Below are positions 3,283 to 57,800 of a DNA stretch of 64,000 nt, piece by piece. The stretch is from positions 1-64,000 of the forward strand of contig ADNK01000067.1 in NCBI GenBank assembly GCA_000320545.1, given 5' to 3'. Each line of letters opens with the position of its first letter. Position 1 is the first letter of the stretch. The translations under genes and the position numbers were made by a program. Below the pieces are notes generated by a model. It did not search any database and had not been told where the DNA came from. It saw only the letters and a program-made list of their open reading frames with translations. The stretch is from Bigelowiella natans CCMP2755. Its lineage: Eukaryota; Protista; Cercozoa.

Positions 3283-5268
3283 ATGGGTCTTCGAGAAATA
3301 CTCGGAGCTCTAGCGGATAAAAACTCTAAACTACGATTCTATATCTCAACTGCGGAGCACGCCATCGTGGCTATTGTGTACGCTGCTTTGTCTTTTCACC
3401 CCCTACCGGCCAACTAACCTCACATCCGTATCATGCATGTATTTAGGCTCTACCGTTGGATTAAAAATGCACTACAGGAGGCAAATTTTGATTCCATAAT
3501 AGACTCAGTACCTGGGGCAGCTATGGTTGTGTTAGCATTTAAAAAAGAAACTTTATTGCCAGATACAATTGATCGGCAATTGATTGATAGATTTCTCTAT
3601 TCGGCTATTATTGATATCATTAGGCTATCAAAATGGGCATGCGATCCGAGGCTGATAAGGTGTTCTTGAGTCATAAATGAAATACTTATAAATAGAATGA
3701 ATGGGTTACTATGCCAAACTTTTTGTGCGCATTTTATTCGATTTAGCGTAGATTACACAATCAGTATCGTGTTGTCACCATCATCGTCGTCATTATAACC
3801 ATCAACTCATCAAGACGCCTATTCGTTGAAACTATGCCTTTTCATTATTTCTAGGCTGTTAAAGATTTGTTTCCTAAAGAACTTGCACCTGTGCTAGACA
3901 AGATACCAGGTGGAGTACACGACCTGCATTTTTATGATTGTGAACAGTGTTACAAGTTTCAATGACAACCGCATTAATGACAGCTACCGGCCTACCGCAT
4001 GAAGATGTACTGAAGGCGCTAGATAAAATGCGCAAACAAGATCATTACAGGTAGCTAGAAGAATGAGAAGAATCAAATGAAAAGACTCTTTAATTTGGAT
4101 TCTAATTGAATGTAGTTTCTGTGCATCACGATCTGGAATCATTTTAACCATTCCATACTGCGGATATGCATATGTACATAAAATTATACAAGCACGAACT
4201 TGGAATTAATATTTATTTATGGTGTATTCTAGATTAAGAGTTTTCTCGTAAAATTGTTCTTCACAGAAAAGAGAAGGGATTTGGTCTAATCTACGGCACT
4301 GAGGACAAGAAACATGAGAATTTTACAACCAAGGCTTATAACAAGTGCTCCACAACACACACACGCCGCCGAATTCACAAAACATGACTTACATTCATGT
4401 CGTTTTATTTATTTGTGTGTGTATGTGTGTGTGTGTGTGTGTGTGTAAGGTATATTTCTTCAAATGCTCTTGATCCTACGGCTTTTCCTTCTCTCCGAAA
4501 AATGGAAGTTGAGGTAGTAGCTTGAAAAGGAGTGGGGTGGGGGGGAGGGAATACTACAATAGCATCAAGAATATAGTTACATACATAAGCAATTTTTGTG
4601 ATTGTATGCGTGTGCAACAGGTTGTCAGCATGACTCTCTCGATGCTGCACGCACCTAAAACAGCGTGTGGGGTCATGACCTCTGGAGGTATGTAGTTAGT
4701 GGCAAGAAGAAGAAGAAGAAGAAAGATCTCCTCCTCATAACAAGTGTAGGGTCTTTATTTTATACAATTCTGTTAACGCTATTGCTGTTGGTGTTGTGTT
4801 TTTATTACGTTGATGACGACAGGGACTGAGTCGATTCTTTGCGCTGTAAAGGCTTATCGCGACCGCGCACGCAGCTTATGGCCGCACATTAAGCAGCCTG
4901 AAATGGTAGTTTCACTAGAGCGTAATATAAAGAATCTATGGCTGCTACTTCATGAGATGGAGCTGTCCTAATTCACAACTACTCACACACGCATTTAAAT
5001 AAGTGCTAACACGTAAAGATCTAGCTCCTATATCTTCACCAAATAAAAGTTCCATTTCATGCTTATCACTCTCTTGTTTCGTCGCTGCCACCCCTCCCTA
5101 ATATACCAGGTGCTAGCCAAATCAGCCCATGTTGCTTTTGAAAAGGTAAGATGACGCAAAGCACTAGGAGGAGACATAGTTGGTTGAGTACCGGGGTTGT
5201 GTTGAAGCCCACCTCCCCCCGCCGCCCCTCAATAGAAAGCAGTTTACTATCAACCACCTCAATGTGAG

Positions 5269-7098: not shown

Positions 7099-7761
7099 GT
7101 CTCCAATCCTACTGAATGATGGTGAAACTACGACTAGGTAAACGCCTTCGCTCTGGGTGATGCGATGCAGAAGAAGGGCTGGAAGATGTCGCGACAGCAA
7201 AATCCAGACTCTTTGCATGTCACGCTCATGCCGGTATTTGTGTATGCATGTGTGTGCGTGCGTGTGTGTGTGTGTGTGTGTGTGTTTGCGTAATGTGTCA
7301 GAAAGCTTGCTTCACACACGTGTGCTTGTATTCAGGGAAGATCAAGATGATATTTTAATTGTCTTGTTTTGATGTTCCCCAACCCCATTTCAGGTACATT
7401 ATCCGGCGCGGAAAAAGCTCGTCTCTGATCTGAAGGAAGCTGTCGAGGTTGTTTGCAGGATCAAACTAAGAATAGTATTGTTGGGATATAGGAGGATTCT
7501 GAAGGATGACTTTAATCTGAAGGCTCATATTATTTCCTCAGATTTCATAATCAATTTTGACATAAAACAATTGAAAGTTCCTTCGAAAATATATCTTAAA
7601 GATTATGTATGAATAATCAGATTGTCAAGAAGCAGCCCTCTCTCAACCGCGAAGGGACTGCAGCTATGTATGGAATGCTCGCACAGATACCCAGCAACAC
7701 AAAACTTGCTGATTTCCTTAAGATTTTGTTTAGCCGCATGTTCATGAAGAATGGGAATTAG
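3283..7761 (+). CDS. SGPL1: Sphingosine-1-phosphate lyase (PLP-dependent, group II decarboxylase fold), multi-exon
   Basis: Exons give [94 protein letters not shown] (PLP lysine)/[54 protein letters not shown]; stop TAG at 7759-7761. Confidence 0.95.
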
Positions 7762-8899: not shown

Positions 8900-9028
8900 A
8901 TGGAGCGTGCTCTAGGTCTCAAAGAGGAGGTAGTGGAGTTTGACATTGTGCTTAGTGAAAGGATCTCAAGTTGCTGCTGTTCATTTTTTGCTTTGTCTTA
9001 CTTGCGTCCTTGCTTGAAAATGTGTGCT

Positions 9029-9070
<42 letters not shown>

Positions 9071-9150
9071 TCCTCTTTGTTTGTCGGCAGGGCAACAAGC
9101 TATTCCGAGGGAAAAATTGGTAGAGTTGAGCAACCACAAAGAAACAAATG

Positions 9151-12200: not shown

Positions 12201-12277
12201 CAATGGATTTTGCTAAGAAATGGGGTGAGACGATTCAAGGATGATGTGCGCGTCAAGCGTTGTCGCACACACACACA

Positions 12278-12320
<43 letters not shown>

Positions 12321-13691
12321 CGCGCGCACTAATCGGATGTGGAAAGACAGTGATAATAGCACACACTTGTGGTTATTATTCCCAAAGATGTTCAGAATAC
12401 AACTTACTAATTAAATCCCACCCCCTTTTCATACGCTACGTGCTTAGGAATGTACATATCTCAACAACTCTCCACGGGTAGCACCCATCCTCCTCCTCCT
12501 CTCCTCCTCCTCCTCCTCCTCATTATCATCATCATTATCATCATCATCATTATCATCATCATCTCAGTTTGTGCTTCAGTCTCTCTATTCCCTTCTCTCC
12601 CCGCCCCCCCCTTCCCTCTTTCCCTCCCTCTCCAACGCCAGCCATTGATATATAAATTATAAAAGAGAGCTGGTGCTTATTTGCTATGACAAACCACCCA
12701 TCAGGTGAACGCAGCTTCAAAGCTGTGACCAAGGCTCTTATTGCTATATTACAGGCAAATCCCCCTCTGGTAGCTCTGCTTATATTCAACAAGAGTCTGT
12801 ACCATACTTCTGATTCGTCGGCATATATTCTTCTTCTTCTTCTTCTTCTTCTTCTTCTTCTTCTTCTTCAGGGCGTCTTTCTTATTACCAACGGAGGAAT
12901 CCTTACGGTGAGAGATACGATAGAACAGATGATAGCGTGTATGCCAAGGCCGTTTAAACAAAGTATTTTGAATGTATTTCCATTGCTTATATAAGGAGGC
13001 GAAGGCTGCAGAGAAGGGTGATATGAAAGGTATTCCCATCCAATGCCAATGGGATTTGTACGCTGCTCGGGGGAGAAGAAGCGCCGTTGTTTCCAACACG
13101 CACACACAAACACGCATGTGCTATATACGATGAACAACTGACGGAAATCCTTTCATTCGCCTCCGCCATTACAGAGCAAATGAAGCAAATGCTACAACAA
13201 GCGAAAGCAAAGAAGCAGCAGCAGCAGGTAGTGTTTGACTAAGACCAAGATCCTAATAGGAAGAGTCACCATATATCAGGAATCTACATCGCCAACACAC
13301 TCGCGCGCGCGCGCGCACACACACACACATCAATGTGTTTTTCTGTTTTATACTCTGTTTTTACATCAAAAAACCGTTTAAATCAGCAGGGTGAAGAAAC
13401 CGAGAAGCGACCTCCTCCCATCCTGGTATATAATGATGGTCATTTTGGTTCTCTATCATCATCATCATCATCGTCATCATCATCATCATCATCATCATGT
13501 TCTACGTGCCTACATGAATACAGAGCTCCTTGGTTGTGAATGCAGCTCATGGAAGCGAGGAGAACCAACGTTGTGCTCTTGGGGTGATTGACCAACAACA
13601 CCACTTATCGTTCATCCAATACGGTTCAATATGACGACGATATAGTAAAGTAAAGATACACAACGCGTGCATGCTCCGTCTATTGTTTTAT

Positions 13692-17267: not shown

Positions 17268-17304
<37 letters not shown>

Positions 17305-19074: not shown

Positions 19075-19163
19075 TGCCTCTACGATTACAATCGAAGGTT
19101 ATGAACGGTGCATGGTCCGCATGTATCAACCTGCTAGCATCCGAAAATCAACAGGTATACACA

Positions 19164-19205
<42 letters not shown>

Positions 19206-19930
19206 CTTCAACGAGTCACTTGACCATTATTTTCATCATCATCATCATCACCACCACCATCATCATATTGCCTGATTGCTTTCTCCCACCGTTCTTCATC
19301 ATATTTCAAGATACAACGCGTTGGTATAGAATGCATGGCCAATTTAGTCGTGTGTGAGAAGTCCTTTGAGGTCGGCAGTAACAGTAATAGTAATAGTAAT
19401 AGTAGTAGTATTGCTGTGCTGCATTGACACTATCTTCTTATATGCCCTTCCTGTTTCCATGAGATATTCGTAAGGATGCACGTGCGTTGTGTTGAATATT
19501 ATCGTATGTATATCAAATATGGTATGCAGCCCTCTGATCTGACCTAGCCCTCCTTCCTCTTCCATGCTCTTGCATCTCAGCGCTTGAAAAAGAGCGAGCA
19601 AGACATCAAGCTGTTCCTGCTGTTTGCCAAAAGCGATGATTTGAAGTGCCAGATGGTACTGCTCTTACTAATACGACTAAAAGGGCTAGCTTGCAAGAGA
19701 ATCTGTCGTGATTATTGTTGTGCGTGCTGTAGGCTGCGAGCGGCGGTCTCGCCATGATGTCGCAAGATCCTGATATCGCCAAGGAAGTTGTTCGTCTGGG
19801 CGGGAAGAAGGTCTTAGAGGAGATCAAGGCAAACGCATCAACGGCCGCCGCCTCTTCTCCCGATCCTTCGCATCAAGCTGTTTTAGCTAGGGTGAATGTC
19901 GCACTTCAATATATCCAGGAGTGCGCATAG
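8900..19930 (+). CDS. UNC45: UNC-45/CRO1/She4 (UCS) myosin chaperone: N-terminal TPR plus armadillo/UCS domain, ~40 exons
   Basis: TPR exons MERALGLKEE/GNKLFRGKN/WSKAAGKYTEAL, IKTLQRRAKAYH...AIK/DLTSLLKKEPKH; UCS-type motifs GLVFLSLVGEAK, IAQDEANRGLLVQQKG, ELHQFEAGL/GLTNIAS, IQRVGIECMANLV, QDIKLFLLF, AASGGLAMMS; stop at 19928-19930. Confidence 0.88.
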
Positions 19931-25330: not shown

Positions 25331-26266
25331 AGTTTTTGGCAGCAATCATGTACACAGCTTCTTTCTTTTCTTCTCCTTGCCGCTAATATTGCATATTCAA
25401 CAGGTCATCAGAGAGCTCTCTGGAAGGTCAATGGACATGATTGTTGGCACGGGAGAAAGGTGAGCAATACTCTCAATAATGAGGAGATTAGGCTAATGAT
25501 GATGATGATGATGATGATGATAATGATAATAGTAGTACGGTGCAGCATTCCAAAAGGCAACATTTCAACAACACTGCTAAGAAAAGCAGCGTGCAATTCA
25601 TTCTCTCTATCATGCCTTGTATTAAACCACTTCGCAAACACATGCTGCACTACTAGTGTCCCAATAGAATATGTTTACAATCACATTGCGTTGGCTATAA
25701 TACATGCAGATTATCTACTACCTCTCACACTTGATATAACAGCGATGTGGATGTTCTCCCTCTCTCAGCGTATCTTCGTTGTATTCCGTTCATTTTTCTT
25801 CCTAATTTATTGCGTGCCTTAGGTTATCGGCCGGTGTGATCGCAGCCGTGCTGCAGCAGGTATATTTATCGTTGTTTTTCTTCCTTCATGAGTCGAGAGA
25901 AACATGGCCACGATGATAGTAGCAACACTGCTAGTCGTACGTGCTTTGAGCCGTTCAGATTCTCATATGATATGTGTATATTACATATCTTACCCTTTGG
26001 CAGGAGGGAATCCCTGGAGAGTACGTTAATCTCTCGAATCTCTTCGATGGCATTGATGCCTCTCAGACTGGATTTGCAGAGCTTGCGAAGAACCGCATTG
26101 GTGTGTGTCCTCTTACAGTTGTGGCCATTAATAGTGTGTGTATTCTCTAGGAGCTGTTTAGATTGTTGTGAAGTATCTTTTGACAGCAGATATACATATG
26201 ATACATATATTTATACATTTATATATTCTTGCTACACATTTTTGGGGGTGGGGGGGGAGGAATACA

Positions 26267-26299
<33 letters not shown>

Positions 26300-27635
26300 C
26301 ACACGCACACGCACACGTATGTTTACTTAGCTCAAGCTTATATCCTCATGTAAAATATAAAAATTAGCCGAGACTCTGATTCCATTGCTTAACGAGGACA
26401 AAGTGCCGGTGGGTGGCTGTGCTTGCAGCACAACAAAACGATGATAATAATGATTGATTCTTCTCTAATCTCTCTTGAACGATAAATACTAACTTCGTAT
26501 CGTCGCCAACATGTTGGTTATGCAACGCCATCACCACGACATAAAGTCAAAATGCCGGTGATTGTATTCACACACTGCTGCTACTCATGCTATTACTCCT
26601 CCTCCTGCTTTCTTTCAGGTTGTGACTGGATTCCTAGGGCACGTAGATCAAGGCATTTTGGAGGGCATTGGAAGAGGATATTCGGATCTTACGTCAGGAT
26701 TAGTTGCAGTAGCTACTGAGGCAAAAGCTCTACAGGTGATGATGATGATGACGATGATTGTGATGATGATGGTGGTGATGATGATGATGACTTTCATGCT
26801 AGAAATTACGGTTTCACGTGTGTGCGTGTATGTGGTTTGTTGATCCTCCCCCCACCTCTCCTCCTCCTCCTCCTCCTCCTCCTCCTCCTCACTAATCACT
26901 ATCATAGGTATGGAAAGAAAGTGATGGTATTTTCACTGGAAATCCAACCAAGGTACAAACCTACATTCGCACACCTGTTGTTGTTGTGAATGTTGTCCTT
27001 ATTCATCCCCCCCCCTCTTCCTTCCTCTTCAGCTTGACAACGCTCGTCTCGTGTACCATGTGACTCCGAGAGAGGTAATTACTAGCAGTATCACTACACC
27101 TCATCATCGATAAGGCTAGTAGTAGTAGGAGGAGGGATTATGATTGATGATGGTAGAATTGAGGAGGGAGGAAGATGAAGATATTAATCCTTTAAGCACG
27201 TATTTCACGTAAGCATTGCCCTGAAACAAAGACACACATATACTGTACAATTCGGTGATTGATTCAATGATGATAAGGCCGCGGAACTTACGTATTTTGG
27301 CAACGAAGTACTTCACCCCTCCACGATGGGTATAGACAGTAGTACAAGCAGAGGAGGAGGAGGAGGAGGAGGAGGAGGAGGAGGAGGGGAAGAAGGAGAG
27401 TAAGAAGGAGGGATTCAGGGTTGGGCATATTTGTAAGCTTAGATGTTGGTAGTGTTGATATGATGATGATTATTATTATTATTATTATTATTATTCTAAT
27501 TTATGCGATTGGTGACTTCCTACTCGATTGCGCTATGTTAGAATCGACTATCAAGCATAGCGTCCCCGTCCACATCCTCAATACGTTCAAACCGGTAATA
27601 AAAGCAACAAACTTCTCTTCCATCACGTTCGTGCA

Positions 27636-27922: not shown

Positions 27923-28576
27923 GCTTACAAACATAGATTCACCTTCTACATTCCAACACAGCACCCCTCCCGGGGCGTTCTGGCAATATCATCAAAGAAA
28001 GGCATCACCATGCTCAATATCTCTTCCAACAAAAAACTGGGGTCCACGAGCTTCCTCGGTCGTGTGTTTGCGAGAGCGGAGAAGCACGGCATCAAGGTGC
28101 TGTACTAGTAGCAATAGTAGTAGTATTCATTGTTGTTGTTGTTGTTGTTGTTGTCAAACGCGCGCGCAGTAGCATAAACAATTGTCACCAACGCTGTTCT
28201 CATGCGTCATCGTCGGAACCGTGTATTTCTTCACGTTGTATTCTTAAATCGCGGCAAGAAGAAGTGTGTTGGCGCTTGATTTCAATTGAAACCAAACCAA
28301 TAGAGGCAGAAGAACCTTGCATGCAAATAATGATATCACTACTGCTACTTTTTCGAATAAGAATGATAATAATGATAATAATACTAATAATACTAATATT
28401 AGGTGGATTTGATCTCTACGTCCCTCGTGAATTTGTCCTTCACCGTGCATGAATCGGTAAAAGATAGTAGGCTTCAATCACACCAGCAAACAACAAAAAG
28501 TGATATTTATTAGCTGTGATGATTCGATGAAAAGGGGTAGTACGGCGCATACACACGCACACACACACGCACACAC

Positions 28577-28614
<38 letters not shown>

Positions 28615-28691
28615 GCAGGTCACACAGAAACAAATATCTGAATTCACCGAGGACTTGGGCGACATCGGGTAGTAAATGATGATACTGATAC

Positions 28692-34508: not shown

Positions 34509-34546
<38 letters not shown>

Positions 34547-35729: not shown

Positions 35730-36783
35730 CCATCCTCATCCTCCTCCTCCTCCCCATGATCTTGTGCTTTTGATCTAGGGAGTGGGTACTATTGCTGCAC
35801 ACCCCATAATATTTCTCATCGCTGCGAGTTTGGGCTTTTTCCAGCACCTATGCACATTGTGGGTGGTCCAGGTGTGTGTGTGTGTGTGTGTTTGTGTGTG
35901 TGTACGTTTGCAGTTAGTTGTTTTGTTCCACACACACACGAAGAGAGATGGATGAGTGGGGGGCTGGGTGCGGATATTTTAAAGCATACGCTATAGTAGA
36001 CACTGGCAGTTGTGTCTTTTTTCAATGCTACCAAAACGTTGGGCCTCCCTCCATTCTACAAGCAAGCCCTCAAATCCACCCCCCCCCACTTCCTCTTACA
36101 TTGCATTGATGGTAACAGACGACGAATGCGCTCACCCTCAAAATCCTTGGCCCTTTGAGGTTGGTAGGAGAGGAAACATTTGCTGCTAAGATATCAATGG
36201 GAGTTGAAGAGGGGGAAGGAGAGAGAGAATTTGGTGTCGCAACAATAAATGATAATTGTAAGGATAAAAACCTGAACATCATAAGACGTCCTCGGTCCTA
36301 GAGAGTGATTGTCGCAATGGCCAATGATGATGCTGGTGTGCGGTATGATGTTATATTGTTAATGTATTCGTGTTTTACGGAGTGTATGCGTGTGTGTATG
36401 CGCGCGCGTGTGTGTGTGTGTGTGAGTGTGTGTGTGTGTGTGTGTGTGCGTGAGCGCCTCTTGTTTTCAATATTTTCCCTCTGTTCCTTTTCTATTCCTC
36501 CTCAGGAGTATATTGGTGGTCGCCGTGAGTGTGATGTGCCTGGGAGAGGAGCTGTCTCAACTAAAGGGATGGGTACGTAATAAACACGAGGAGGAGGTTA
36601 AGGAGGAGGAAGAGGAGAGCATGATGCTGACGAGGCTGATAATACGTTCCTAATGTTGACGTTAGTTGGGAACGTAATGGGATGTTTGAGGGGAGAGGGT
36701 GTTGGGGGGTTGATCCTGAAACGTCATCATTGTTGCTAGCCATGTCTAACGGGATATTGTGTTTTCGCTTTACTAAATTGTGA

Positions 36784-37999: not shown

Positions 38000-39330
38000 T
38001 ATCTAATCGGTGTGACAATCTCATTACGAAATAATGTGCACCACCGTAGAATTTTGCCAATGAATAAGGGTGTCCACAATTCCATTTCGAGAACGATGTC
38101 ACGAAGTCGAACCGAAGTTTCCAGTGAACAGCTCACATTGCCGCTTGTACTTCTGAACGCATACATTGTATTGATGTACAAATACCTTCATGGGAGAATG
38201 CGTTGTGTACTCTTCTTACCTCTTGTTATCACGCTCTGTGCGGCCATCATGTTGTCACCCGTATTGCTGTTGATGCCTACCACATGACCGATCAGAACTC
38301 ATCACAGTCTTCGTCGTTCAAAAAATTTCGAGGAAGAAATATATTGAGACAAAGCTACCTCCTTTCGGCTCCTCAACGTAGAAGTCTCGTGCAATGTGTT
38401 TGTCTGTTACCCATCCATGCTCTCCACCGCCCATCACCTCTGTCCAAGCTTGGCGGGTGTTATCGTCCCAGTTATGATTATCCATGAAGTTGTCGCTAAG
38501 ATTGTACGACGCCATAGGCACCAACTCTAGGCCTCCTCCTTCCTGGTTAACCATAATCGTAAGAAAGTCTTAGTAACTTCATTGCCACCATTGTAAAATG
38601 AAGGCTACCTTCTCCTTGAGAAGACCAAGAATCGCCACTTTCTTCGAGGTCTGTGTTACCCATTCTTCCGACGTAACTTTTCTCCCTGTAGCGGCCTCCA
38701 GCAACGATTCACCGGCAACTTCTGCGAATGCACCCATGGCTGCGCCAAGGAAGCCCCCACCCGATTTATTGTCTCCCCCAATTGCTTGGTTGACTTGGTT
38801 TGCGATTTGGTTTCCAGGAGGGCCATCACGTTTTTGATGGTCTTTAGAAATAAACACGAAAGGCTCGCTCCTGATGAAGATTGCCTTGTCACCAGAGCAG
38901 AGATAGAAATCGACCTTCCTTTTTTCGTCTTTTATGGTTTTTGATCTATTCTCGTCCCCATCCTTCCAGTGCTCTTGGACCTAAAAAGGAACTCCATATC
39001 AGCCAATTTTTATTGTCTCCACTGTCCTTCGTGGATAAACATCAATATAGTTTTACATCACGGTGGTACCTTAAGATGGTAAAATACACACTGTCGGGGT
39101 GTTACGGGACAGTTCAGTGGCGTCTGAGTGGTAACCCACCTATGAAGAACACAAAGCTGATCCACCCATTACATGTTCAATGGTATCGAAAGGAGCGAAT
39201 TGTTGTTTCCTTACCCGACAACTTTAACGGCCTCGCCCACCTTCGCGTCCCCCACACGTACACACGGGAACGCGTTAAGAACCAAATCCCGTTTTTGGTA
39301 ATAGTTTAGGCAGCAGTAGCAGTTCCCCAT
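38000..39330 (-). CDS. Putative N-myristoylated/palmitoylated protein with a GIDE-like region (3' end approximate)
   Basis: Starts MGNCYCC. Exons: AFPCVRVGDAKVGEAVKVVG / TQTPLNCPVTPRQCVFYHLK / VQEHWK...KVDFYLCSGDKAIFIRSEP...VAILGLLKEK. The gene is well supported; the GIDE assignment rests on pattern recall only. Confidence 0.55.
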
Positions 39331-39961
39331 TGCTATTAGATGCGCGAGCAAAAAGAGATTAGTATCTTCAGTTTCAGCACAATGACACGAAGGTGTTGAT
39401 CCGCCCCAACCCAAAACATGATTGATTCTCTTCCTGCGGCAAGCACAAATTGTTGTCGCACCTCTCATCACTGGTAGGTGAGATATTTTTGGCTTTTCAA
39501 ATCTAGAAATCTGCGCGAATGATTGCGCACGTCATTGTGAACCAATGATCAGTTGCATGCGTTTCGCACGCTTTGAACGTCTTGCAACGTGCAGTTCATC
39601 GTGCTCGAGTGACCCTCTCGAGTTGCACCCTGCTGCGTGCAAATGCCTGTCTCCCATGTGGTTCTAGCCGGGGATGTTGTGGTGGGCATGAAGTGGACCA
39701 TCAAGGGGGTTTCACATCCCCCGGGTTTTGGTCCGTATCATGCTCGGCGGTTTTGCCCCGGCGTCAGCCGGGAAAATTTTTTCGATTTCACCCAAAAAAA
39801 TGCAAATTTTGTTCAAATTCCTCAATGTTTTCTTCAAAAACCATCCACAAAATGTCTAGTGAAATTACTAGCACCGTGTCATTAGCCCTCTGAGAATTCT
39901 GAAACTCACACCGTCCCAACCAACTTCCCCTTCCTTTCCCGTCCACCTCCAACCCACCACA

Positions 39962-40279
39962 ATGGATGAATCCAACTGGGCAATTGACACAGGGAAACAT
40001 GTTCGTGTGCATTGGAGGCATGATGGCCAGGTGAAATGTTGGACCTGTGTTGTGGGAAAGCAGAAGGGAGCATCATTCTCTGTGCGTGAGGTGGGAGGTA
40101 ATTCTTTTCCTTGGGGCGGTGATGATGAAATCCTTTCGCCCAAACAAGACGAATGGAAATTTGTGAGGCGGACTTGCATCGAAGATGCTGTGAAGGATGC
40201 ATGCAGTGCCTGTTCGGATGGTTCTAGAGGGCGTTGTTCACATGAAGCCATGGAGCATGACCCACAGGACATGGTGAGT

Positions 40280-40314
<35 letters not shown>

Positions 40315-40644
40315 TCTTGACAGCCATCATTTGAACAAACGCATTCGAATCAGAAGGGAGTCGTCACTGAAAACAACAGAAGTGTGGAGGGCATGAGCTT
40401 GGACTGGATCGCTCCTTGTGAATCAAATGAGAGTTGTCACAACCAGAAGGCCAGCAGACCACCTTCAGAATGGCAATTCCCCAGTTTGTTTGCGAAAGAT
40501 TTGTGTGCAATTTGTGTTTTGGTTTTGCAATGGTGGGTGTCCGTGTTGTCAGAAGAAAAACAGGAAGCTCAGATGCTTGCATGTCACGTCTCACAAGGCA
40601 TCAACCAACAGAAAGAGACGATTGAATCCCCGGAGGACTGCTGA
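39962..40644 (+). pseudogene. Probable fossil spliced gene: Tudor/SH3-like first exon, (GT)n intron 40274-40323, second exon
   Basis: DTGKHVRVHWRHDGQVKCWTCVVGKQKG...DEWKFV; gtgag...cag intron with a host-like microsatellite; the reading frame continues in phase. No Tyr, excess His/Cys. Confidence 0.4.
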
Positions 40645-40804
40645 TGCAACTTTGAAATCACATTCACATGATCATGGTGGCATGCATTCATCACACAACA
40701 TCAAAATCGCTTTCCAATTGTCATCATCAACCACGCACACACACACACACACATGCACACACACACACACACGCACGCACATGTGGAGCTCCAAAGATGC
40801 AGTG

Positions 40805-41018
40805 TGCGATGGCATGTGACAGCATGCGACAGTCTGCGATGGCACGTGATGGCATGCGACAGTGCGTGTGCGACAACATGTGCGATGGTGTGTGACAGCG
40901 TGCGACAGTGTGCGAGTGTGCGATGGTGTGTGATGGTGTGTGATGGTGTGCGATGGTGTGCGATGGCATGCGATGGCATGCGATGGTGTGCAACAGCATG
41001 CGATGGCATGCGACAGTC
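40805..41018 (+). repeat. Degenerate 10-bp tandem repeat, ~20 units, pattern YG-YR-A-YR-G-YR
   Basis: Units include tgcgatggca, tgtgacagca, cgtgatggca, tgcgacagtg, tgtgatggtg, tgcaacagca. Confidence 0.9.
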
Positions 41019-42789
41019 GCAAATTGACAGGTCAATGAGCATGCACGCATGATCCAATGTTCAAGTCGTTGATTTGTGTGAATTTTTTGAAAAAGTGAAA
41101 AGTTTCGTCATTTTTTTTTGGTCAAATTCACTTGTTTCACAAACATCATGTCACATCCAGCTTCATTGATTGCCGCATCTGGCCGCTGGGAGGCACACAT
41201 CGAAAACTCACCAAAGTCAAAATCACCAAAAAAAGCACTTTTTTGGCGCGGAAACGTTCAATTTTGCGAATTTTGGAGTGGAACTTCTGGAGGTGATGGA
41301 GTTGCTGTTGACACGGCCTCTGAGCATGTTTTTTTGAGCCAACGCGCAAAGGGGACCCTTTCCGCGGCACCCAAAGTTTTTGCCCTCGATTTTTTTCCTT
41401 GAAAATCCACTTTTTTGCACCCCTTTCTGGACAGTTCTGGACCTTCTCACACGTCCAGAAGTCTTCTGTGGTGCTTCGGAAGAAGTTTGGAGTGGATTCC
41501 GAGCATGACACGGACCAAAACCCGGGGGAGTGAAACCCCCTTGTGGACCATGAAGGTGTGGTCCATGGGATTGTGCTCTTGGGGGTCGCAGGTGTGGTGT
41601 TCTTGCTTGGTGATCTCCAAGCATGAGCAAACCATCACGACAGGATTCAGGGATGCGTGATCCTGAAGTTGGCAAACATCAGGCACTGAAAACAATGAAA
41701 CTAGGAACGGGGGAGTGGCCACAATGCCATTCTTGATTCCTTTTGGTTTCACTGGATGGTCCTCACTGAAGTTGGTTCGAGGCACTGCGTTTCGTGCACT
41801 GCAAGTGTCTTGTTGCACTTTGGAAATGCAGTCGTTCTTTGTCATTGTTCATTGTTCATTGTTCTGGCGCATGTGGTTTTGATCAACGCTTTCTTCATTG
41901 TTCATTGTTCACACGATTGCGCCGATGCGGTGATGGGCGGGGGGGTTTCGGTTGCGAGGGTGGCTTTTCCTCCCATCCCTTCACCACATGCCTGTTCACC
42001 GGTGGGACAGACAGACGTGTCGCCCCAGTGACTTGGTTGCCATTGCATCTGGCTTCGATCACCAGTTTCAGTTGCAACCTGGCCGAGCCGCACTGCGCAC
42101 AACAGTCACAACCTGGACACATTCCAACTGTGCCAACAAATGACAGATGGTTCACTTGGCCTTGACTCATCTTCTTTGGCGTCCTTGGACACAGGTAGCC
42201 ATGGCAACTTCATCCCTTGATGCGGCTCTGGCGCCTCAGATGGGTTGTTAGCTGGTTTTTGTGTCTCATCACCAACAGGGTGCTGACAAGTCCTCACAAC
42301 GAGTGTTGTTGAGGCTCTGCTGCATGCAAACGCCTGTCTCCCATGTGGTTCTGGCGCGTGCAGATTTGATCAACGCTTTGTTCTTTGCACATTGTTCATT
42401 GCCAAACAAAGGTTGTCTTTGTCTGAAAAGCTCAATCCAGGATCAAGCCTTTCTCGACCACGTGCGTGCTGGCGTGTCCTCAATTTGCGTGTCCTGTCCC
42501 TCTCGAATGGATCCATCTCAAGGAGTTTTCACTCCCGGAAAAAACTTTCCGCATTTCCTCTCGGCCACAATGCTTCGGCCACTGATTGTGACAGTCAGAG
42601 ACAATTCTCACCAAAATCAGCAAAACGAAGATGCGGCTCGAAGCCTCGAGAGTCGGTGGGGGAAACGAAGCAAAACTCACAGAGACCTCAAACCAAGTCC
42701 GTGCAGATTTTCGTTGAGATTGGTTGTGGGACGGCACTTCCCCTAGTGACTCTTGAAATACGCGGCACATTGATGATTCCCTGTGTCAA

Positions 42790-44925: not shown

Positions 44926-47309
44926 TTATACATTATATAATATGCCCCTCCCCGCCCCTACCCCTCGAAGATGTCTGTCTCTCATACATCCCCTATCCCC
45001 TATCTTTGTATGTTTGTGTAATAATGTGCTTGTTGGTGTGCACGCTGCTCCTTTATTGCACAACAGCTATTTTCTAATTCGTCAAACCCCCCCCTCCCCT
45101 TACCCCCTCTACAGCTGGACGGATCCTTCGCCCCCCGCTTCATGGACAGAACCTAAGGATGTTACAGCGCTCGCAAACATATGCCCACAGGTATTCTACG
45201 GCATGCCTTTATTCACACGCACACGATCGTAGTAGGCTAATTTTGACCAATAATTCCAGCCAAAAGATCCAGGCGTCACCCGTGCCGTGGTGGGCAAGGA
45301 AGACTGCCTGTATCTTTACGTTTACACTAGTAGCGGTCCCAATCCAGCGAAGTCTGAGCTCAAGCCTGTGATGCTGTGGGTGCACGGAGGGGGGCTGCAG
45401 GTGGGGGATGGGTATCTTGGAGATGCTGGGGGACCGAGTGGGTTTTATGATGGCTCGAATCTCGTCAGGGAGTTTGATGTGGTGGTAGTGTCCATCCAAT
45501 ATCGTCTTGGGACCTTGGGTACTACAATAAGGAGCGAAACTTGCGCGCGACACACGTATACCTGTGCAGATATCCTCAAAAGAAGTTGAACTAGTTACAC
45601 ATATTTTCTCCTGCTGTTGGGTCTCTTAAAAGCATCACTGATACATCTCAAAAGGTTTTCTTGCTTCGGATCTTTTTAAAACGGCTGGAACAACGCCGAG
45701 TGGCCAGGCTGCTGATGGGTTCTTTACATTACATACACACACCAGCAAAATGGATAGTGCCCATGCAACAGTGCTGCATCGACAACACATAAACACACAT
45801 CATGCTTGCATGCAGGTATGGAAACTTCGGTTTCAAAGACCAGCGATACGCCATGCAGTGGGTGCAGAGAAACATCCAAGGATTTGGAGGAGACCCAAAT
45901 CGTGTCATGCTTTTTGGTGAATCTGCTGGTGGAATTAGCATGTGCTATCACCTCACCTCTCCTGCGAGTGCTGGGCTCTTCCAGGCCATCACAATGGAGT
46001 CGGGAAGCTGCTACATGCAGGTGGAAATAATGCCCATGCATCTCTAATTTGGGTCTTTCCTATGTTGATATCGTTTATCCTCATCGATACACCAGATTCA
46101 AAACATGAGCAGCGGATGGGAAATGGCCGAGTCAATTGCAGGGCTCGCGGGCTGCCCAGTCGGGCCAACTGTCGCAGCGAATGACACCAGAGATTGTTTG
46201 CTAAATGCGCCATTACGCGATCTTGTATATCCAATGGGGGACGAGAAGGCTGCTCTTCCTGGAAGCAATTATTGGGCAGCTCCCGATTGGCCGTGGTGCA
46301 TGACAGTTGACGGCACAACGGAGGTCGTAGTAGAAATAATCATGTGTTTCCAAGATGATAAAACGGAATTCATGTTATTTACGCACGCTCGCACACACAC
46401 ACACACATACACACACACACACACACACGCACACACACATAGAACTACACACTTGTATACCGCACCATCAGCAAATGGTAAGATACCGTAGACACACACA
46501 CGCAGTGTACGCCGCTCGTTAATAAATACACGCCCCATGCACATTTGTACCAGGGATTGGTTTCGCCCCCTCACGTGCTCTTGAGCGAAGGAAGTTTTTC
46601 GCGAGTTCCTACAATATTTGGCACCAATACCAACGAATTTAATTGTGACTGTGACGTTACCGATCCAGACAAAGATTGCCTCTTCGCTGATGGCCTTCCA
46701 TCGATGATTCCAGGATTGAGTCCTCCTTATTCTGATGCAGATGTTGCCACTGTCCTTGGGCATTTCCTCGGAAAGAGTCTTAGTCAAGCACAGTTTGATG
46801 AAGCGCTGGCTATGTATCCGATTGAGGAATTCAAGTGGAATAACACGGCGCGCATATCAGCAATGCTTGTAGATACGACTGGATGGATTGGGTCTTGTAG
46901 CACACAGAAGTCCGCACAGATGATGCTGGGCCACGGCCATGCTGATATATGGCTGTACCACTTCGCTCGTCTGGGTGAAATGAGGAGGGTGGGGCACTTC
47001 TCAGAAGTTGGCTACGTCTTCCAGAACTGCTTAGCCTGTGGAACAGACAGTATCACAGATTGCTGCCAAGGTACAAACAATTCAGCTCCGGATCTTGCTC
47101 TCTCGAAACTAATGGGCTCATACTGGTCAACGCATGCTGCAAAGGGCGACCCCAATCGCGTCGGTCTCCCCTTCTGGCCACGCTACAAACACTTTAGCAA
47201 ACTTGTCATGCGTTTCGACATCGAATCGACTGTGACCCTTGGGTATAGGGAACTACACTGTGCATTTTGGGATAAAATCTATGGTGGCGAGAGCGGTAGC
47301 CATACATGA
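44469..47309 (+). CDS. Secreted carboxylesterase type B (alpha/beta hydrolase), multi-exon
   Basis: FHSIPYAQPPVG, GKEDCLYLYVYT, PVMLWVHGGGL, VVVVSIQYRLGTLG, GNFGFKDQRYAMQWVQRNIQGFGGDPNRVMLFGESAGG (Ser), GTNTNEF (Glu), VGHFSEVGYVF (His); hydrophobic N-terminus. Confidence 0.95.
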
Positions 47310-51279: not shown

Positions 51280-52039
51280 TTAGTCGGAGAAGGGTTTGTC
51301 CAGAGCTTCAAGTTTTTCAACAACGGGAGCAAGCAGGGCCATTCGCGTTGTCAGTGTTGCAGGGGCAGGAAGAGCAAAGAAGTCTTTGAGCCCTACCTCT
51401 GCGCGTGCATCACGGATCGCATGTCGCAATGCCATGAGAACGCTAGAGGCAAGGACAAGTGGGGGTTCTCCTGAGGCCTTACTACTCAATACACGGCCAA
51501 CCTTGTTCCCTTGCAGCAGGTTCAAGTTCCACTCACGGGGGACGTTGATTGCAAGCGGGGGCTTGTACTCCCACGTCCCGTTGGAGATCAATTCTCCGGT
51601 GCCCTCATCGTAGAGCACCTCTTCTTGAATCATCATTCCCAAGCCCTGCATGAAGCCCCCCTCGGCCTGTCCGATGTCGATGGCGGGGTTCAGGCTTTTG
51701 GCGCAGTCGATGATAAGATCCACTCGATCTACTACGATCTCGCCCGTCATCACATCGATCTCAACCTGCAGAGATATCAAATGCAACGAAACCGCAATGC
51801 TGCCTTAGCTGCACTTACAAGCTGCTAAGCCTACAGAAATTCGAGGTAGTGGAACTGACTGATACGTTTCCCCCCCCCCTACTCTTCGTTCCATGGAGAT
51901 GTTATCCAAGGAAAAAAGACATGCGTTGTATCCGGTTATTGATGATACCTCGGAGCATCCAACACCCCAGCAATTGTATGTTGCTTTATCGTTGTCCTTT
52001 GTATCCGACCAATGGCCAAGTGCCTGTCATTACCATTAG

Positions 52040-52084
<45 letters not shown>

Positions 52085-52479
52085 TACACGAATGCACCAA
52101 TCAATCAGCAGGAGCCATCCAGTAGAAGGAAATATGTTGTAACTTTCATTAAAGAATAGGAGAGAAGAGGAGAGATTTCGAGCGCTGTTGCTTTACAGCA
52201 GCGCCTTCCCCCGAGATGCAATGCCGCATTGAAAAACATCGCCACTCCTCACCTGCATCATCATATTAGCCCCCTCCGCAGCGGCACAGACTTGACCAAA
52301 TGAAATGGGCTTCCTATCATCATGCGTAGAGTCTTCTCCCCCCTTCGACTCCGATTTCGCTTTTTCCTCCAACCCGGCCAAGATAGGCCCCATCCTCTTC
52401 ACCAATGCCTCACAAGCGCGGCGAGCAGCCTCACAAGCACCTGGGGCAGGTAGGAGATGAGTATGGTCAGTAAGCTAGA

Positions 52480-52511
<32 letters not shown>

Positions 52512-54809
52512 ATGGTGGTGGTAGTAATAATACCCTCAGTGCCAGTAGAACCACCGGTGAAGACTTGACTGGACAACATACGTGATTGGTACTGCGCGAA
52601 TTTGATCTTGTCGAGAGAGAGGGGCTCTCCCGTTAGCTTGCCTAGCTCATGGGCTACGACTTGCGCGACCTTTACTTGGATTCCTTGTCCCATCGGCGTA
52701 GCGCCGTGCATCACACACACGGTGCCGTCGGTGTACAGATTCACGAGTGCGGAGCGTTTCCAAATGTTCACCTTTGAGGGCGATGATGTGATGATCATGG
52801 TGGTGAATAAGGACGCTGCTGCTGCTGATGATGATGAGCGATAACGGGTGATGATGATGATAATGATTACTGATACTGATTAATGTTATCAACGATTGCA
52901 TTAAAGATAAGCACTATTGGAACAATAAGCAGTGAGAAGGAAATAAATTCCCGGTAGTCTACTTTTTTTGCAGAGAATATTAAGATCATATCGTCGTCAG
53001 CAGCATTTTAATCGAATATGTATATATCTCACTGCTATACCTAACTACTACTGCTGCAACTGTCTGTCAGCATGCCTAGCTGCACCTATTACCTTGTAGC
53101 GCATTGGCACCATACAGATTCCCTTCTTCTTGAGCTTGTTGGTGCTGTTAAAGGCTTTGACCTTTTCACTACGTTTTTTGTAGTCGCAGGACGCCTCTAG
53201 CTCCTCCCAGCATTTCAGTGCCGTGTACTTGTCGAGCTCGGCGAAACCGCAGTCCTTCAGGATCTGTTGTTGTCGTTGAAGGAGAGACGTAAGGTATGGG
53301 CTCGGAGGCTGCGATAGAGCAGCGCTAGCGACACTTATTACAACAAACGCTCATAAATCCATATTATACGTATTTTAGATACTGCGACAGGGCAATTGCG
53401 CCATTGTCCTTGTGTTGTTGTTGTTGTTGTTGTTGTTGTTTCTACTACCTTTTCATCATCCGGAAGCATATTAGTCTTGCGGACTTGATGAGGGTCGAGA
53501 TTGAGCGCGTGGGCGACGTGCTCGATGATGGTTTCAATATGCACAGACGCCTGGATCTCGCCTGGCCCGCGCATCACCTGAGTTTGTGAACAAAGAAACA
53601 ACACCACGAACAAGAAAAGGGTGATTATGCAAAGCAGAACACAGAATTCAATTTAAACCAACTAATTCTAAAGCATATCCGCTCGCAGCAATACCACTGT
53701 CTCTGTTTATGATTTATGGCTAATCGAGAAGCAATCGAATTCACATATTTAGAATTTGTTGTTCTTGCATTGTCGGGAGCGCGGACGCTACGCATTGTAC
53801 ACCGACATTGACAGGAGCTTCGTTGGTGAGACACATGCGCGCTGTGATCTCCCTATTAGGAAGATGATACGCCTGCGTGAGTGCACTCCCAACGGACATG
53901 TTTGTGAACCAGCCGAGGTTGGCAGAGGCACCGCTTGCAAGCATATGCTCGAAGCTGAGCGCTTTGATCTTGCCCTCTTTCCCAGAGGCGACCTGCATTG
54001 TGTACATATGCAAGTTCACCAGGACATGGAGGTAAGCAAGTTGTGTGACAATATCTATGCAAAGGTCATCCACTGTCTCTGCCATTATATTTCATCATCA
54101 TCATCATCGTCATCATCATCGTCATCATCATCATCGACCACCCCCATCCCCACCTTGTAACTAGCTTCGCAGTCTGGTCTCCCCCCTACAAGCTGCATGT
54201 CGCAGTTTCGATCCAGATGCACATACACGGGCGCGTTGAAGCGTGTTGCGGCAATGGCTGTGATCTGTGCGCCGTAGCCGATGTTCTTCCCTCCGAACGA
54301 CCCTCCCATCCGACCATGCACTATATTAATCATGCTCATAGGTTTCTTCACAGCTGCGGCAATGTTGGAATTCGCCCCTTGAGGCCACTGCGAAGAGACC
54401 ACCACCCTGATGCCGCGTTCTTCGTCGGGGACGGCGTAGGCGAAGCACGGATCCATGTAGAAGTGTTTCTGCCTTCCAACTCTGGATTTTCCTTTCAGAA
54501 CTACGCCCTTCCCTTCCTCATCGGCGAATACCTTCTTCGCGTCGCCCGCGTCGTTCTTGAACTCGGTTGGGAGGAAGGGGAGGCTCGGAATGATCTCTTT
54601 GCTTTCTACCGCCTTTGCAATGGAGAGAATAGCCTCCTTGCCGTCAGCCTGCTCTTCGTAGATCACGCGAACGAATCGGATGGCGTTCCGTGCTTGCTCC
54701 AGCGAGTCGGCGATTAGCAGACCCACACATGCACCGCTGAGGTTAGTCGTAGTAGCAGTTGTTGTAGTAGTAGTAGTAGTAGTAGTAGTAGTAACCAAGC
54801 TCGCGTGAG

Positions 54810-54841
<32 letters not shown>

Positions 54842-57800
54842 TGTGTTTGCGAATAAGGAATATAAGATTTGCAGCCGTAATCCCCCCCACCCCCTCATCT
54901 TTACCATTACCATCTCCTTAATAATAAATAATAATAATAATCACAATAAGAAATCAAATCATGGTGGTCATGATACCTGTAAGGCACCTCCTCGCCCTTA
55001 CCGAGGACAGTCGTGGGCTTGTAATAGCACGTAAGCTTATCTCCAAGATCATAGGGTTCGCCAGTAACGGACCAGGTGTTGTCGCCTACCTCTGCTTTGG
55101 CAACGTGCCTACAGTTGGGGAGGAGAAGAGTACAAAGATCATTATTCTCTAATGAATCTACTGCTTCGACTTTAGACACACCATGCATGCATACACGCGA
55201 CAAAAGCAACATCTCCAACTGATAAATAAATAAATAGATGGATAAGCAGTTAATAGATAGCTACCCCCTGACTCCAGGCTGCTTCAGAGCCACAGAGAAG
55301 TCGACGTCTTTGATCACAGCTCGAGCTCGACGTGCGTAGGCAATGGCTCCGAACAGGGTACCGCCCACAGGAGTCGTGTCTGAGTTGAACCTGACAGTTT
55401 TCACCAAAATCACCCATCATGATCATCATCATCATCATTACCACCACCACCATTCACCACCACCACTAGCATTTCGGGTGGTCATCATTTCATGGCGAAT
55501 TTCGGTCCATCGTCCACGCAGGGGTACCAACTTTGCGCTGCCTGAGGAGAGAAGTTTCCCGCTGAGGAGGGGGATTGGAAGAGAGACGGGAGCGTGCTCC
55601 TCACTGAAGCCGAATGACTGTTTGGCGCAGGATACTCTCAATCGCTTTGCATCGATAGTCTCTGCAGCGGACGCGACTGTTTTGTCGCTTTTCGAGGAGA
55701 ACCCCAAACAGAATCTCACGAAAAAACTATCGGCCAATGCCACGCGCGAAGACGCACGGAGGCCTCCTGACAATGGATCGAGATGGTATGTTAGATGATG
55801 ATAAGTGGGTTCATCATAAGAGTTGCAAATAATAACAGTGATAAGACTTAGACTGATGGCGCGTAAAATAATAGTAATAATTTCTAGACTGATGGCGGCA
55901 AAGCCGAGCGTGCATGCGCTTCTTTTCCTACCAGCTTTCTTGACCATTTGCTCCACAGCCTCTCGGAGGGCCTTGCGCGCCTTGCGATATACGCTATTGG
56001 TCAACTTCTTCCCTTCCATGATCTTCTCCACCCCCCCCATCCTGATAGCGTGAGAGCCAGCATCCTCATGCGACATCAGTCCCCCGTACGCTATAGTAAC
56101 TCCTTTCACCACACCGTCGCTCCCGCACGAAGCCTTGAAGGCGGCGTTGACGATAGCATGCGCATTCACGGGGCGAATTGCCGCACGGTAGGTCTTGAAC
56201 ACGGCACCAGCCCCCGCGTGGAAGGGAATGAAAATGGATTCGAGAAGCGTCATGTCTACGGGCAGCTTGGGAGTAGCGAGGAACTCCTCCATCGTCTCCT
56301 TCTTGTCGGTTTTCCCCGCCCATTTTACGATTGCACCAGCTCCGAGAAGGATCGTTGCTAGGTCGGAGAGAAACCTGTGGTGACGGCGTCACCAGTAATG
56401 GAGGCCAGGGCGCGATATTAGTTGGGTTTCGTTTGTGCGTGCATTAAAGGATGATAGTCATGTATTACTCTACGCTAGATATTCACCCCCCCCCCTCCTC
56501 CTCCTCTTCCTTCTTCTTCTTCTCCTCATTCTCTACATCTGCTACAATCATCCTTTGGTTTTTGCGACAACAACAACAACAACAACTACTACTACTACTA
56601 CTATCACTACCCTTTGGTCTTCGCGAGCATGATATTTCCTGCAATACTGCCAGAGTCCCGCACGTGCACATTTGCCACCTTAAAATCACATCACCACCAT
56701 CATCATTATCATTATCGTCCAGGACATTTACCATTATGGCCGGTGACGTAGTACTACTATTTAATACTGCTAGTAAGAGCACACTCGTGGGACAAATACG
56801 CTCTCCTTCACAGTCGCATTTCGTTTTATTGAGAGTGAACAATGCCGTACCTTCTTCATGTGTGCTACAAGCGGTGCAAACGACACGCTCGCGCTGGTGA
56901 TATCGAAGCCATATACGAATGAGCGCAATGATTTTAAGCGACGATGAAGATATTTCGCGGGCGACGATAGAAAGAGCTAATATGCTGCTTCACAGATAAA
57001 TGAGGGAACGAATTTGTTGCTTTCTTTACCTTTTATTTGCGGTGAGGGCATTCATAACGTGTGAGATCTTGGATGCTGCTCCGACAACAATGCCATCGCC
57101 AACCACTGCATCGTGCACATTACAAGTTCAGCACAACCAAACGCAAGTAATCAAAAAATAAAATAGAAAAAATCACACCTTTGACGCCGTTGATTTCAGG
57201 AATATCCGAGATATCAATGAATCTTTTACCAACATTACAGAATAAAACAACCAGTTGAATTAGCCACATAAATGAGTAGTAAAATCATGTACTTCCCAAT
57301 CGATTTTCTCAGGGAATGCATTAGGTTTCTGCTGTCGTCTCATTCGATCCCTCCCTCCCTTAGCTCCATCAATTAAACTACTACCTACACTCTCTGCCAT
57401 CGAGTTTCTTCGCTCTATTGCTCCCTATTTCTAAGCCCTCTCATGGCCCTACGACTCCCTGACAGTTGCTTTTCATCTATGGCCTCCCTCCCTCCCTCCT
57501 CCCCTCCCTGTAACAAGTGAATAAAACTAGACGCACGTTTTGTACTCCTTTGACTCGAGGTGCCAATGATGCGTTCTCTTCAGCCCCTTCTCTTCGGAGG
57601 AATCAGAAACGAATGCGGGCTTGTAGATGCCGTAGCTTGTTTTCCCTGATAGTCGTAACAAATCCCACGCATACGACGCAAAGAGCACACCATGTTGTTA
57701 TTACAAACTCAGGTACACAGCAACGAGGTATGGAGGAGGACTTCTCCCCTTCCTGATGAGATTGTGTTACATACGCACAGAACCGCCAACACGTTATGTT

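Follow-up and report, generated by a model that had tools for sequence, protein, structure and literature searches.

We analyzed a 64-kb window (positions 1 to 64,000 of contig ADNK01000067.1, the whole stretch of DNA considered here) of the genome of the cercozoan Bigelowiella natans CCMP2755. It contains an island of about 3.38 kb that has lost nearly all of its TpA dinucleotides, and we relate this loss to a hypermutation process described in the same species. The features on which the argument rests are the following, and the island statistics are given against the remainder of the window as background.

39364–42743, no strand: whole TpA-depleted island, with 14 TpA, six of them in CTAG
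39885–42743, no strand: strict desert, with five TpA (observed/expected 0.03)
39962–40644, plus strand: gene model jgi|Bigna1|66645 (fgenesh1_pg.2_#_35) of scaffold_2, spliced translation identical
40806–41018, plus strand: minisatellite, 21 repeats of the 10-bp unit G[C/T]GA[TG/CA]G[TG/CA]T, by unit alignment
41151–41543, minus strand: core of a second dispersed repeat family, within the open reading frame (ORF) 41223–41675

The strict desert measures 2,859 bp (A 674, C 672, G 753, T 760) and holds TpA at 40099, 40225, 41702, 42196 and 42249 only, four of the five being TAG, where its composition predicts 179. CA and TG are in excess (observed/expected 1.77 and 1.61; background TA 0.85, CA 1.22, TG 1.18), AA, TT and AT are kept (AA 1.24), TC shows no depletion (1.05), and CG falls to 0.65 in the island from a background level of 0.83. 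The TpA-free gap from 40225 to 41702 spans 1,477 bp, compared with a maximum of 155 bp outside the island, and no 500-bp window elsewhere across the 64 kb falls below a TpA observed/expected of 0.36. The original prediction, made from the letters alone, had counted the same five TpA, none between 40227 and 41701, against 150 to 180 expected, together with the TG/CA excess, the retained AA, TT and AT, the four TAG survivors and five TpA in the line 39001–39060 just outside the island, all of which counting reproduced exactly. Its right border is also confirmed: the edge at 42743 is sharp, with the next TpA at 42744, 42759 and 42790, and the flanking DNA has an ordinary TpA content. The left border had been set too far in, as depletion begins at about 39364; the left part (39364–39884) contains nine TpA, four of them CTAG. 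Over the whole island, 14 TpA remain of the ~220 expected by background density. The GC (guanine plus cytosine) content of the island is 49.8%, that of the window is 44.2% with a TpA frequency of 6.4%, and the corresponding genome values are 44.9% and 6.0% (Mettrop et al., bioRxiv 10.64898/2026.01.13.699255).

In a mutation accumulation (MA) study of B. natans, Mettrop et al. (bioRxiv 10.64898/2026.01.13.699255) found that TpA mutates to TpG or CpA about 1000-fold faster in integrated viral DNA, with 231 of the 302 nuclear point mutations falling in an insert from a nucleocytoplasmic large DNA virus (NCLDV; scaffold 10) and in a virophage (scaffold 146). The mutations in the inserts were almost only A>G and T>C at TpA and arose in some lines only; the NCLDV insert is single-copy, has a TpA rho of 0.45 and is still mutating. 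The authors mapped 124 TpA-depleted clusters, in which transposon and viral domains and unannotated genes are enriched, proposed a DNA adenine deaminase with ADAT2 as the candidate, and interpreted the process as a defence resembling repeat-induced point mutation (RIP). Among the coding sequences low in TpA and high in CpA + TpG, Tables S6 and S8 both include 66645 and 77467, with the neighbouring model 66646 in S8 and 80831 in S6. The original prediction knew of no described defence system with this signature; on that point it is superseded, as the preprint describes the mutator and lists gene 66645. The phenomenon, its reading as a defence and even this gene were already known, and the discovery is the preprint's. 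Our additions at the locus are modest, namely the sparing of CTAG and copying after conversion; the preprint makes no mention of CTAG sparing, flanking context, minisatellite evidence or post-conversion copying. When its cluster thresholds are applied to the island, three consecutive 1-kb windows qualify in 12 of 20 phases and one or two in the rest, the phase on the scaffold not being fixed.

Gene 66645 has three exons (39962–40097, 40149–40273 and 40324–40644) separated by GT-AG introns of 51 and 50 nt. Its exact match to the JGI model assigns the window to scaffold_2 of the B. natans nuclear genome (Bigna1). Its coding sequence of 582 nt contains a single TpA and no tyrosine codon, as expected if TAT and TAC have been erased. 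A protein search identified two paralogues, Bigna1 77467 on scaffold 48 and a second protein (P0001). The differences between protein paralogues include histidine against tyrosine at position 20, histidine against cysteine at position 94, where one codon carries CA in one copy and TG in the other, and cysteine against tyrosine at position 193. A distant homologue with 33% identity (P0007) is encoded at positions 74–490 of a 999-bp environmental contig (L001; ENA ERZ4903294, NODE_46306) and still has its tyrosines. This contig is partially depleted (TpA observed/expected 0.54, TG 1.69, CA 1.61), which may represent the same process in a relative or a younger copy. Placement of the gene model 66646 within the window was attempted, and no location was found. 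A relation of the 66645 N-terminus to FG-GAP repeats was also considered, but the HMMER matches were weak (E 2.5e-7 and weaker) and were judged uninformative.

The composition of the island can be accounted for by conversion. In the best fit, reverting 93 TG and 92 CA to TA gives observed/expected values of 0.83 for TA, 1.21 for CA and 1.16 for TG, and a reconstructed ancestral GC of 43.4%. The same arithmetic bears on the decay of CpG in methylated repeats, which would yield a TG/CA excess, as might an assembly or masking artefact. The lower CpG ratio of the island fits such decay, as does the fact that some repeat copies differ as CG against TG or CA. However, CpG decay does not remove TpA, of which about 185 were lost, and the 115 CpG of the island roughly equal the number that background predicts once the reconstructed ancestral composition is used, so that no CpG decay is needed. 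An artefact is contradicted by the exact match of the locus to an independent JGI gene model and by paralogues and transcripts of like composition. We regard both explanations as barely credible.

Direct evidence for the direction of change comes from the minisatellite. Two dinucleotides of its unit are each fixed as either TG or CA, and all four combinations occur. As TG and CA are each one change from TA and two changes apart, the ancestral unit was GCGATAGTAT. Each TpA of the array was thus converted through one of its two strands, and the choice of strand was independent even between sites 3 bp apart.

Two further repeats lie within the island.

40281–40313, plus strand: (GT)n microsatellite within intron 2 of 66645
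40728–40787, plus strand: (CA)n microsatellite, interrupted by CATG and CG

Microsatellites of the (GT)n and (CA)n types are very common throughout the window, TA-normal DNA included. Examples are found at 4414–4446, 7240–7295, 9022–9084, 12264–12329, 17270–17303, 19147–19207, 26264–26322, 28545–28632, 34510–34544, 36382–36453 and 46381–46456. Since such repeats abound in TA-normal DNA, the two in the island need not descend from (TA)n.

Comparisons between copies are consistent with the minisatellite. Besides the gene and the second family core, the island contains short motifs that occur more than once.

39627–39668, plus strand: short repeat motif with a second copy at 42314–42355, by internal alignment
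39694–39747, plus strand: short copy of the second family, inverted relative to 41499–41550, by internal alignment
41858–41911: partial third copy of the 39627–39668 motif
42243–42410, plus strand: longer copy of the 39627–39668 motif, resembling the MMETSP transcript ORF P0008

When the alphabet was collapsed to purines and pyrimidines, the minisatellite became ~98% self-identical and the short internal repeats 98–100% identical, which means that nearly all differences between units and between copies are transitions. The motif at 39627–39668 and its copy at 42314–42355 differ by transitions only, among them CTAG at 39665 against CTGG at 42352, and a TAT is kept at 39736 where the inverted copy (41515) reads TGT. 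Differences of the TA type between copies thus appear as tyrosine against histidine or cysteine and as TAT against TGT; the CG against TG/CA differences mentioned above concern some copies as well. A matching of lost NTAN to gained NTGN and NCAN tetranucleotides was noisy, the 3.4-kb region being too small for it.

Taken together, the accounting, the minisatellite, the transitions and the copy differences at TA-type sites say that conversion, not avoidance, made the TpA loss. The central proposal of the original prediction, a local mutator turning TpA into TpG or CpA on both strands, is supported by the 93/92 accounting, the minisatellite alternatives and the paralogue differences.

The second repeat family gives information on timing. 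At the DNA level, the relatives available for comparison were a transcript contig (L002; JGI sample 3300017095) and the environmental contig described above, the other paralogues being compared as proteins. The core at 41151–41543 is 94% identical to L002, which has itself a TpA observed/expected of 0.07. Over the 404 bp of L002:205–608, essentially all TG and CA states are common to both copies; the 13 mismatches include one of the TA type (CCCAG against CCTAG, at 41188) and no pair of TG against CA. Most of the conversion thus predates the copying. Copies without TA continue to be expressed, since L002 is a transcript contig. The protein paralogues of this family are Bigna1 82810 (scaffold 97) and 80831 (scaffold 74). 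Among the protein paralogues compared for the island, the motif GFGP[C/Y]HARNP alternates between cysteine and tyrosine.

Two of the dispersed repeat families have at least three and at least five copies. The island is thus a patchwork of two or more dispersed, transcribed repeat families, one of them with GT-AG introns, and not all targets of the hypermutation are recognizably viral. No transposase, reverse transcriptase or viral gene was found in the island by domain searches. At its borders, a transition-tolerant aligner found no terminal repeats, target-site duplications or other transposon ends, and only the short internal motifs aligned. An Rfam scan of the whole window gave no family, and no relatives were found in IMG/VR and the JGI metagenome contigs by protein search and a 25-nt DNA pattern. 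The predicted dependence on repeated DNA is doubtful, as the main target in the preprint is single-copy.

These observations bear on the view that the DNA lacked TA from the outset, or through selection, and that no mutation removed it; it could have come from a foreign TA-avoiding source or have been selected against TA-targeting nucleases or transposons. The paralogues do have most of their TG/CA states in common, so that a TA-poor common ancestor existed. Yet single sites of the minisatellite carry TG in some units and CA in others, some copies keep TA or tyrosine, and reversion of TG and CA restores exactly a host-like GC and host-like ratios. No relative was found in the metagenome and virus collections just named, and the mutational process has been directly observed in B. 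natans by the MA experiment. We consider this explanation highly improbable.

The transcription of the repeat families, seen in L002 and P0008, would likewise suit an ADAR-like A-to-I hyper-editing of repeat double-stranded RNA followed by reverse transcription into the genome; ADAR favors a U on the 5′ side of the edited A, as discussed in the preprint (bioRxiv 10.64898/2026.01.13.699255). The island does not look like such a retrocopy: the gene copy retains its introns, and conversion is as complete in introns, intergenic DNA and the minisatellite as in exons. The gains in TG and CA match, so that both strands are affected alike, at sites as close as 3 bp; AA is undepleted, though ADAR edits after A as well; and in the MA experiment integrated single-copy DNA mutated in place. 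A route through RNA is accordingly very unlikely.

The TpA that survive are far from a random sample. CTAG makes up six of the 14 in the island (39504, 39665, 39857, 39869, 40225 and 41702) and all four in L002 (30, 90, 561 and 776). Together these are 10 of the 18 survivors, whereas CTAG accounts for 3.9% of TpA in the background (p = 3e-10). By background density, 11.6 CTAG would be expected in the two sequences and 10 are observed, whereas the remaining TpA number eight against 285 expected. The other NTAN are down to 0–22% of background, and no CTAA, CTAC or CTAT is left. In the minisatellite, ATAG became both ATGG and ACAG. Since the ATAG of the minisatellite was converted, a 3′ G alone does not explain the survival of CTAG, and the CTAG palindrome itself appears exempt from the mutator. 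In Table S2 of the preprint, TAG half-sites account for 20 of 206 MA events (9.7%), against 19.8% of half-sites in the window background, here no more than a stand-in for the viral region. Alternatively, CTAG might have been regenerated from CCAG or CTGG and then have persisted, but this too would need resistance to the mutator. An exemption of CTAG points either to recognition of double-stranded DNA or to a mark, such as N6-methyladenine, that protects CTAG specifically. That the mutator reads beyond TpA with CTAG fully exempt, and that transcribed families whose TpA are exhausted may thereby escape the defence, is a tentative suggestion.

The MA data give the strand pattern and the rate. By a hand tally of Table S2, 206 of the 211 scaffold 10 mutations, 91 of them A>G and 115 T>C, are at TpA, and hand runs tests on lines 1, 3 and 19 showed no strand runs. 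In the island we looked for strand-coordinated patches, as runs of TG or of CA, and found none beyond background; the succession of TG and CA in the island shows no excess clustering over background DNA, and hence no sign of long single-strand tracts. The 206 TpA events, with 6,169 TpA and 3,132 generations, correspond to ~1.1e-5 per TpA per generation. At this rate, 97% of TpA would be lost in ~3e5 generations, so saturated islands need not be old.

Regarding the same table, four T>C events of scaffold_10 have reference triplets off TpA, at 402688, 416158 and 450385 (ATG) and at 431449 (ATT), where the text of the preprint places all but one on TpA. The event at 450385 is two bases from another in the same line, at 450383.

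We conclude, with a probability of roughly 0.85, that the TpA>TpG/CpA hypermutation process of B. natans left this island behind as its saturated fossil. The data demonstrate an in-place, both-strand and site-independent conversion of TpA to TG or CA in chromosomal DNA, with the de novo part coming from the preprint. In the sequence of events that we propose, a 3.4-kb block of dispersed repeats would have been marked as a target, and at nearly every TpA the A of the top or of the bottom strand would have become G, giving TG or CA with equal probability. Sites would have been struck independently and without strand runs, CTAG would have been left untouched, and the conversion would have lifted the GC of the island from ~43% to 50%. 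The preferred chemistry would be an enzymatic deamination of adenine to hypoxanthine in chromosomal 5′-TA-3′, by an enzyme recruited through a silencing or foreign-DNA mark, the change being fixed as G during replication. We would give this chemistry about even odds.

The same targeting could also operate with another chemistry, in which a thymine dioxygenase of the TET/JBP type modifies the T of TpA to 5-hydroxymethyluracil (5hmU), possibly oxidized further, which is then miscoded or misrepaired as C. As TpA is palindromic, modification of thymine gives the same both-strand pattern of TA>CA/TG, and lesions of A and of T leave indistinguishable traces in the sequence data of the island. Oxidized thymine derivatives pair with G. 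In dinoflagellates, 5hmU replaces T preferentially in TA and TC; transposons and integrated DNA viruses are enriched in it and silenced by it (PMC11572971). However, 5hmU itself pairs normally with A, and the dinoflagellate preference covers TC, which is undepleted in the island. We hold a thymine lesion, the main rival, to be unlikely and keep adenine deamination as the favored chemistry.

Several points weigh against our reading of the island. Table S2 has a single mutation on scaffold_2, a G>A at 288048, and thus no de novo TpA event at the locus; activity at the island cannot be shown, because its substrate TpA are exhausted. Much of the TA-poverty of the island was inherited from an already converted source copy and not made in situ, to judge from the states common to its copies. 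A Pfam search of 26 ORFs and proteins from the island, its flanks and the paralogues gave no domain in the island sequences or the paralogues, and as no viral or transposon domain is present there, the rule of foreign-DNA targeting is not shown for the island. A simple rule of T before A does not predict the sparing of CTAG. ADAT2, the candidate enzyme, is a universal tRNA enzyme.

Host genes lie downstream. An exon at 46545–47309 (plus strand), 3.8 kb from the island, belongs to the carboxylesterase family (Pfam COesterase, E 4e-14) and has a normal TpA content. A gene of the xanthine dehydrogenase/aldehyde oxidase type occupies 51280–56292, with exons at 51280–51786, 54085–54798 and 55438–56292, all on the minus strand and carrying the domains MoCoBD_1, MoCoBD_2 and CO_deh_flav_C. 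At their edges, the frames of these exons extend into long Thr and Asp homopolymers, probably simple repeats of the introns.

Removal of TpA as a genome defence in a eukaryote, in the direction AT>GC, is the mirror image of fungal RIP, and its enzyme, if found, would be the first case in nature of a DNA adenine editor or of a mutagenic thymine modifier serving defence. The locus provides a clean end state, as it shows that the process can run to completion (97% of TpA lost) with sharp borders and that non-viral, intron-bearing repeats are affected. The minisatellite and the paralogues serve as internal controls that polarize the change without an outgroup, and the apparent exemption of CTAG constrains the nature of the enzyme.

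Among known systems, the closest is the hypermutation described by Mettrop et al., which shares with the island the species, the assembly, the both-strand signature, the enrichment in CpA + TpG and the local rise in GC. Compared with the NCLDV and virophage inserts of that study, the island is saturated (0.03), small, multi-copy and intron-bearing, and lacks a viral or transposon domain. RIP of ascomycete fungi is alike in that local, dinucleotide-specific transitions ruin repeated or invading DNA and leave sharp compositional islands. Its direction is the opposite, from CpA to TpA (C>T) with falling GC, where the island has TpA at 0.03, CpA at 1.77 and TpG at 1.61; and RIP requires duplication and a sexual cycle, while the main target in B. 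natans is single-copy and mutates in clonal growth. APOBEC3 and AID also carry out context-dependent enzymatic hypermutation against viruses and retroelements. APOBEC, however, produces C>T/G>A in TC and CC contexts on single-stranded DNA and usually in a strand-coordinated manner, in contrast to the A>G/T>C at TpA and the absence of strand runs in the island. ADAR and TadA/ADAT2 convert A to I, read as G, and prefer a 5′ U or T. These are naturally RNA enzymes, and ADAR edits after A too and would reach DNA via reverse transcription only. Finally, 5hmU of dinoflagellates shares the preference for TA (and TC) on transposons and integrated viruses (PMC11572971), but there it serves as an epigenetic mark for which no mutagenic effect has been shown, it occurs in unrelated organisms, and its second context, TC, is unaffected in the island.

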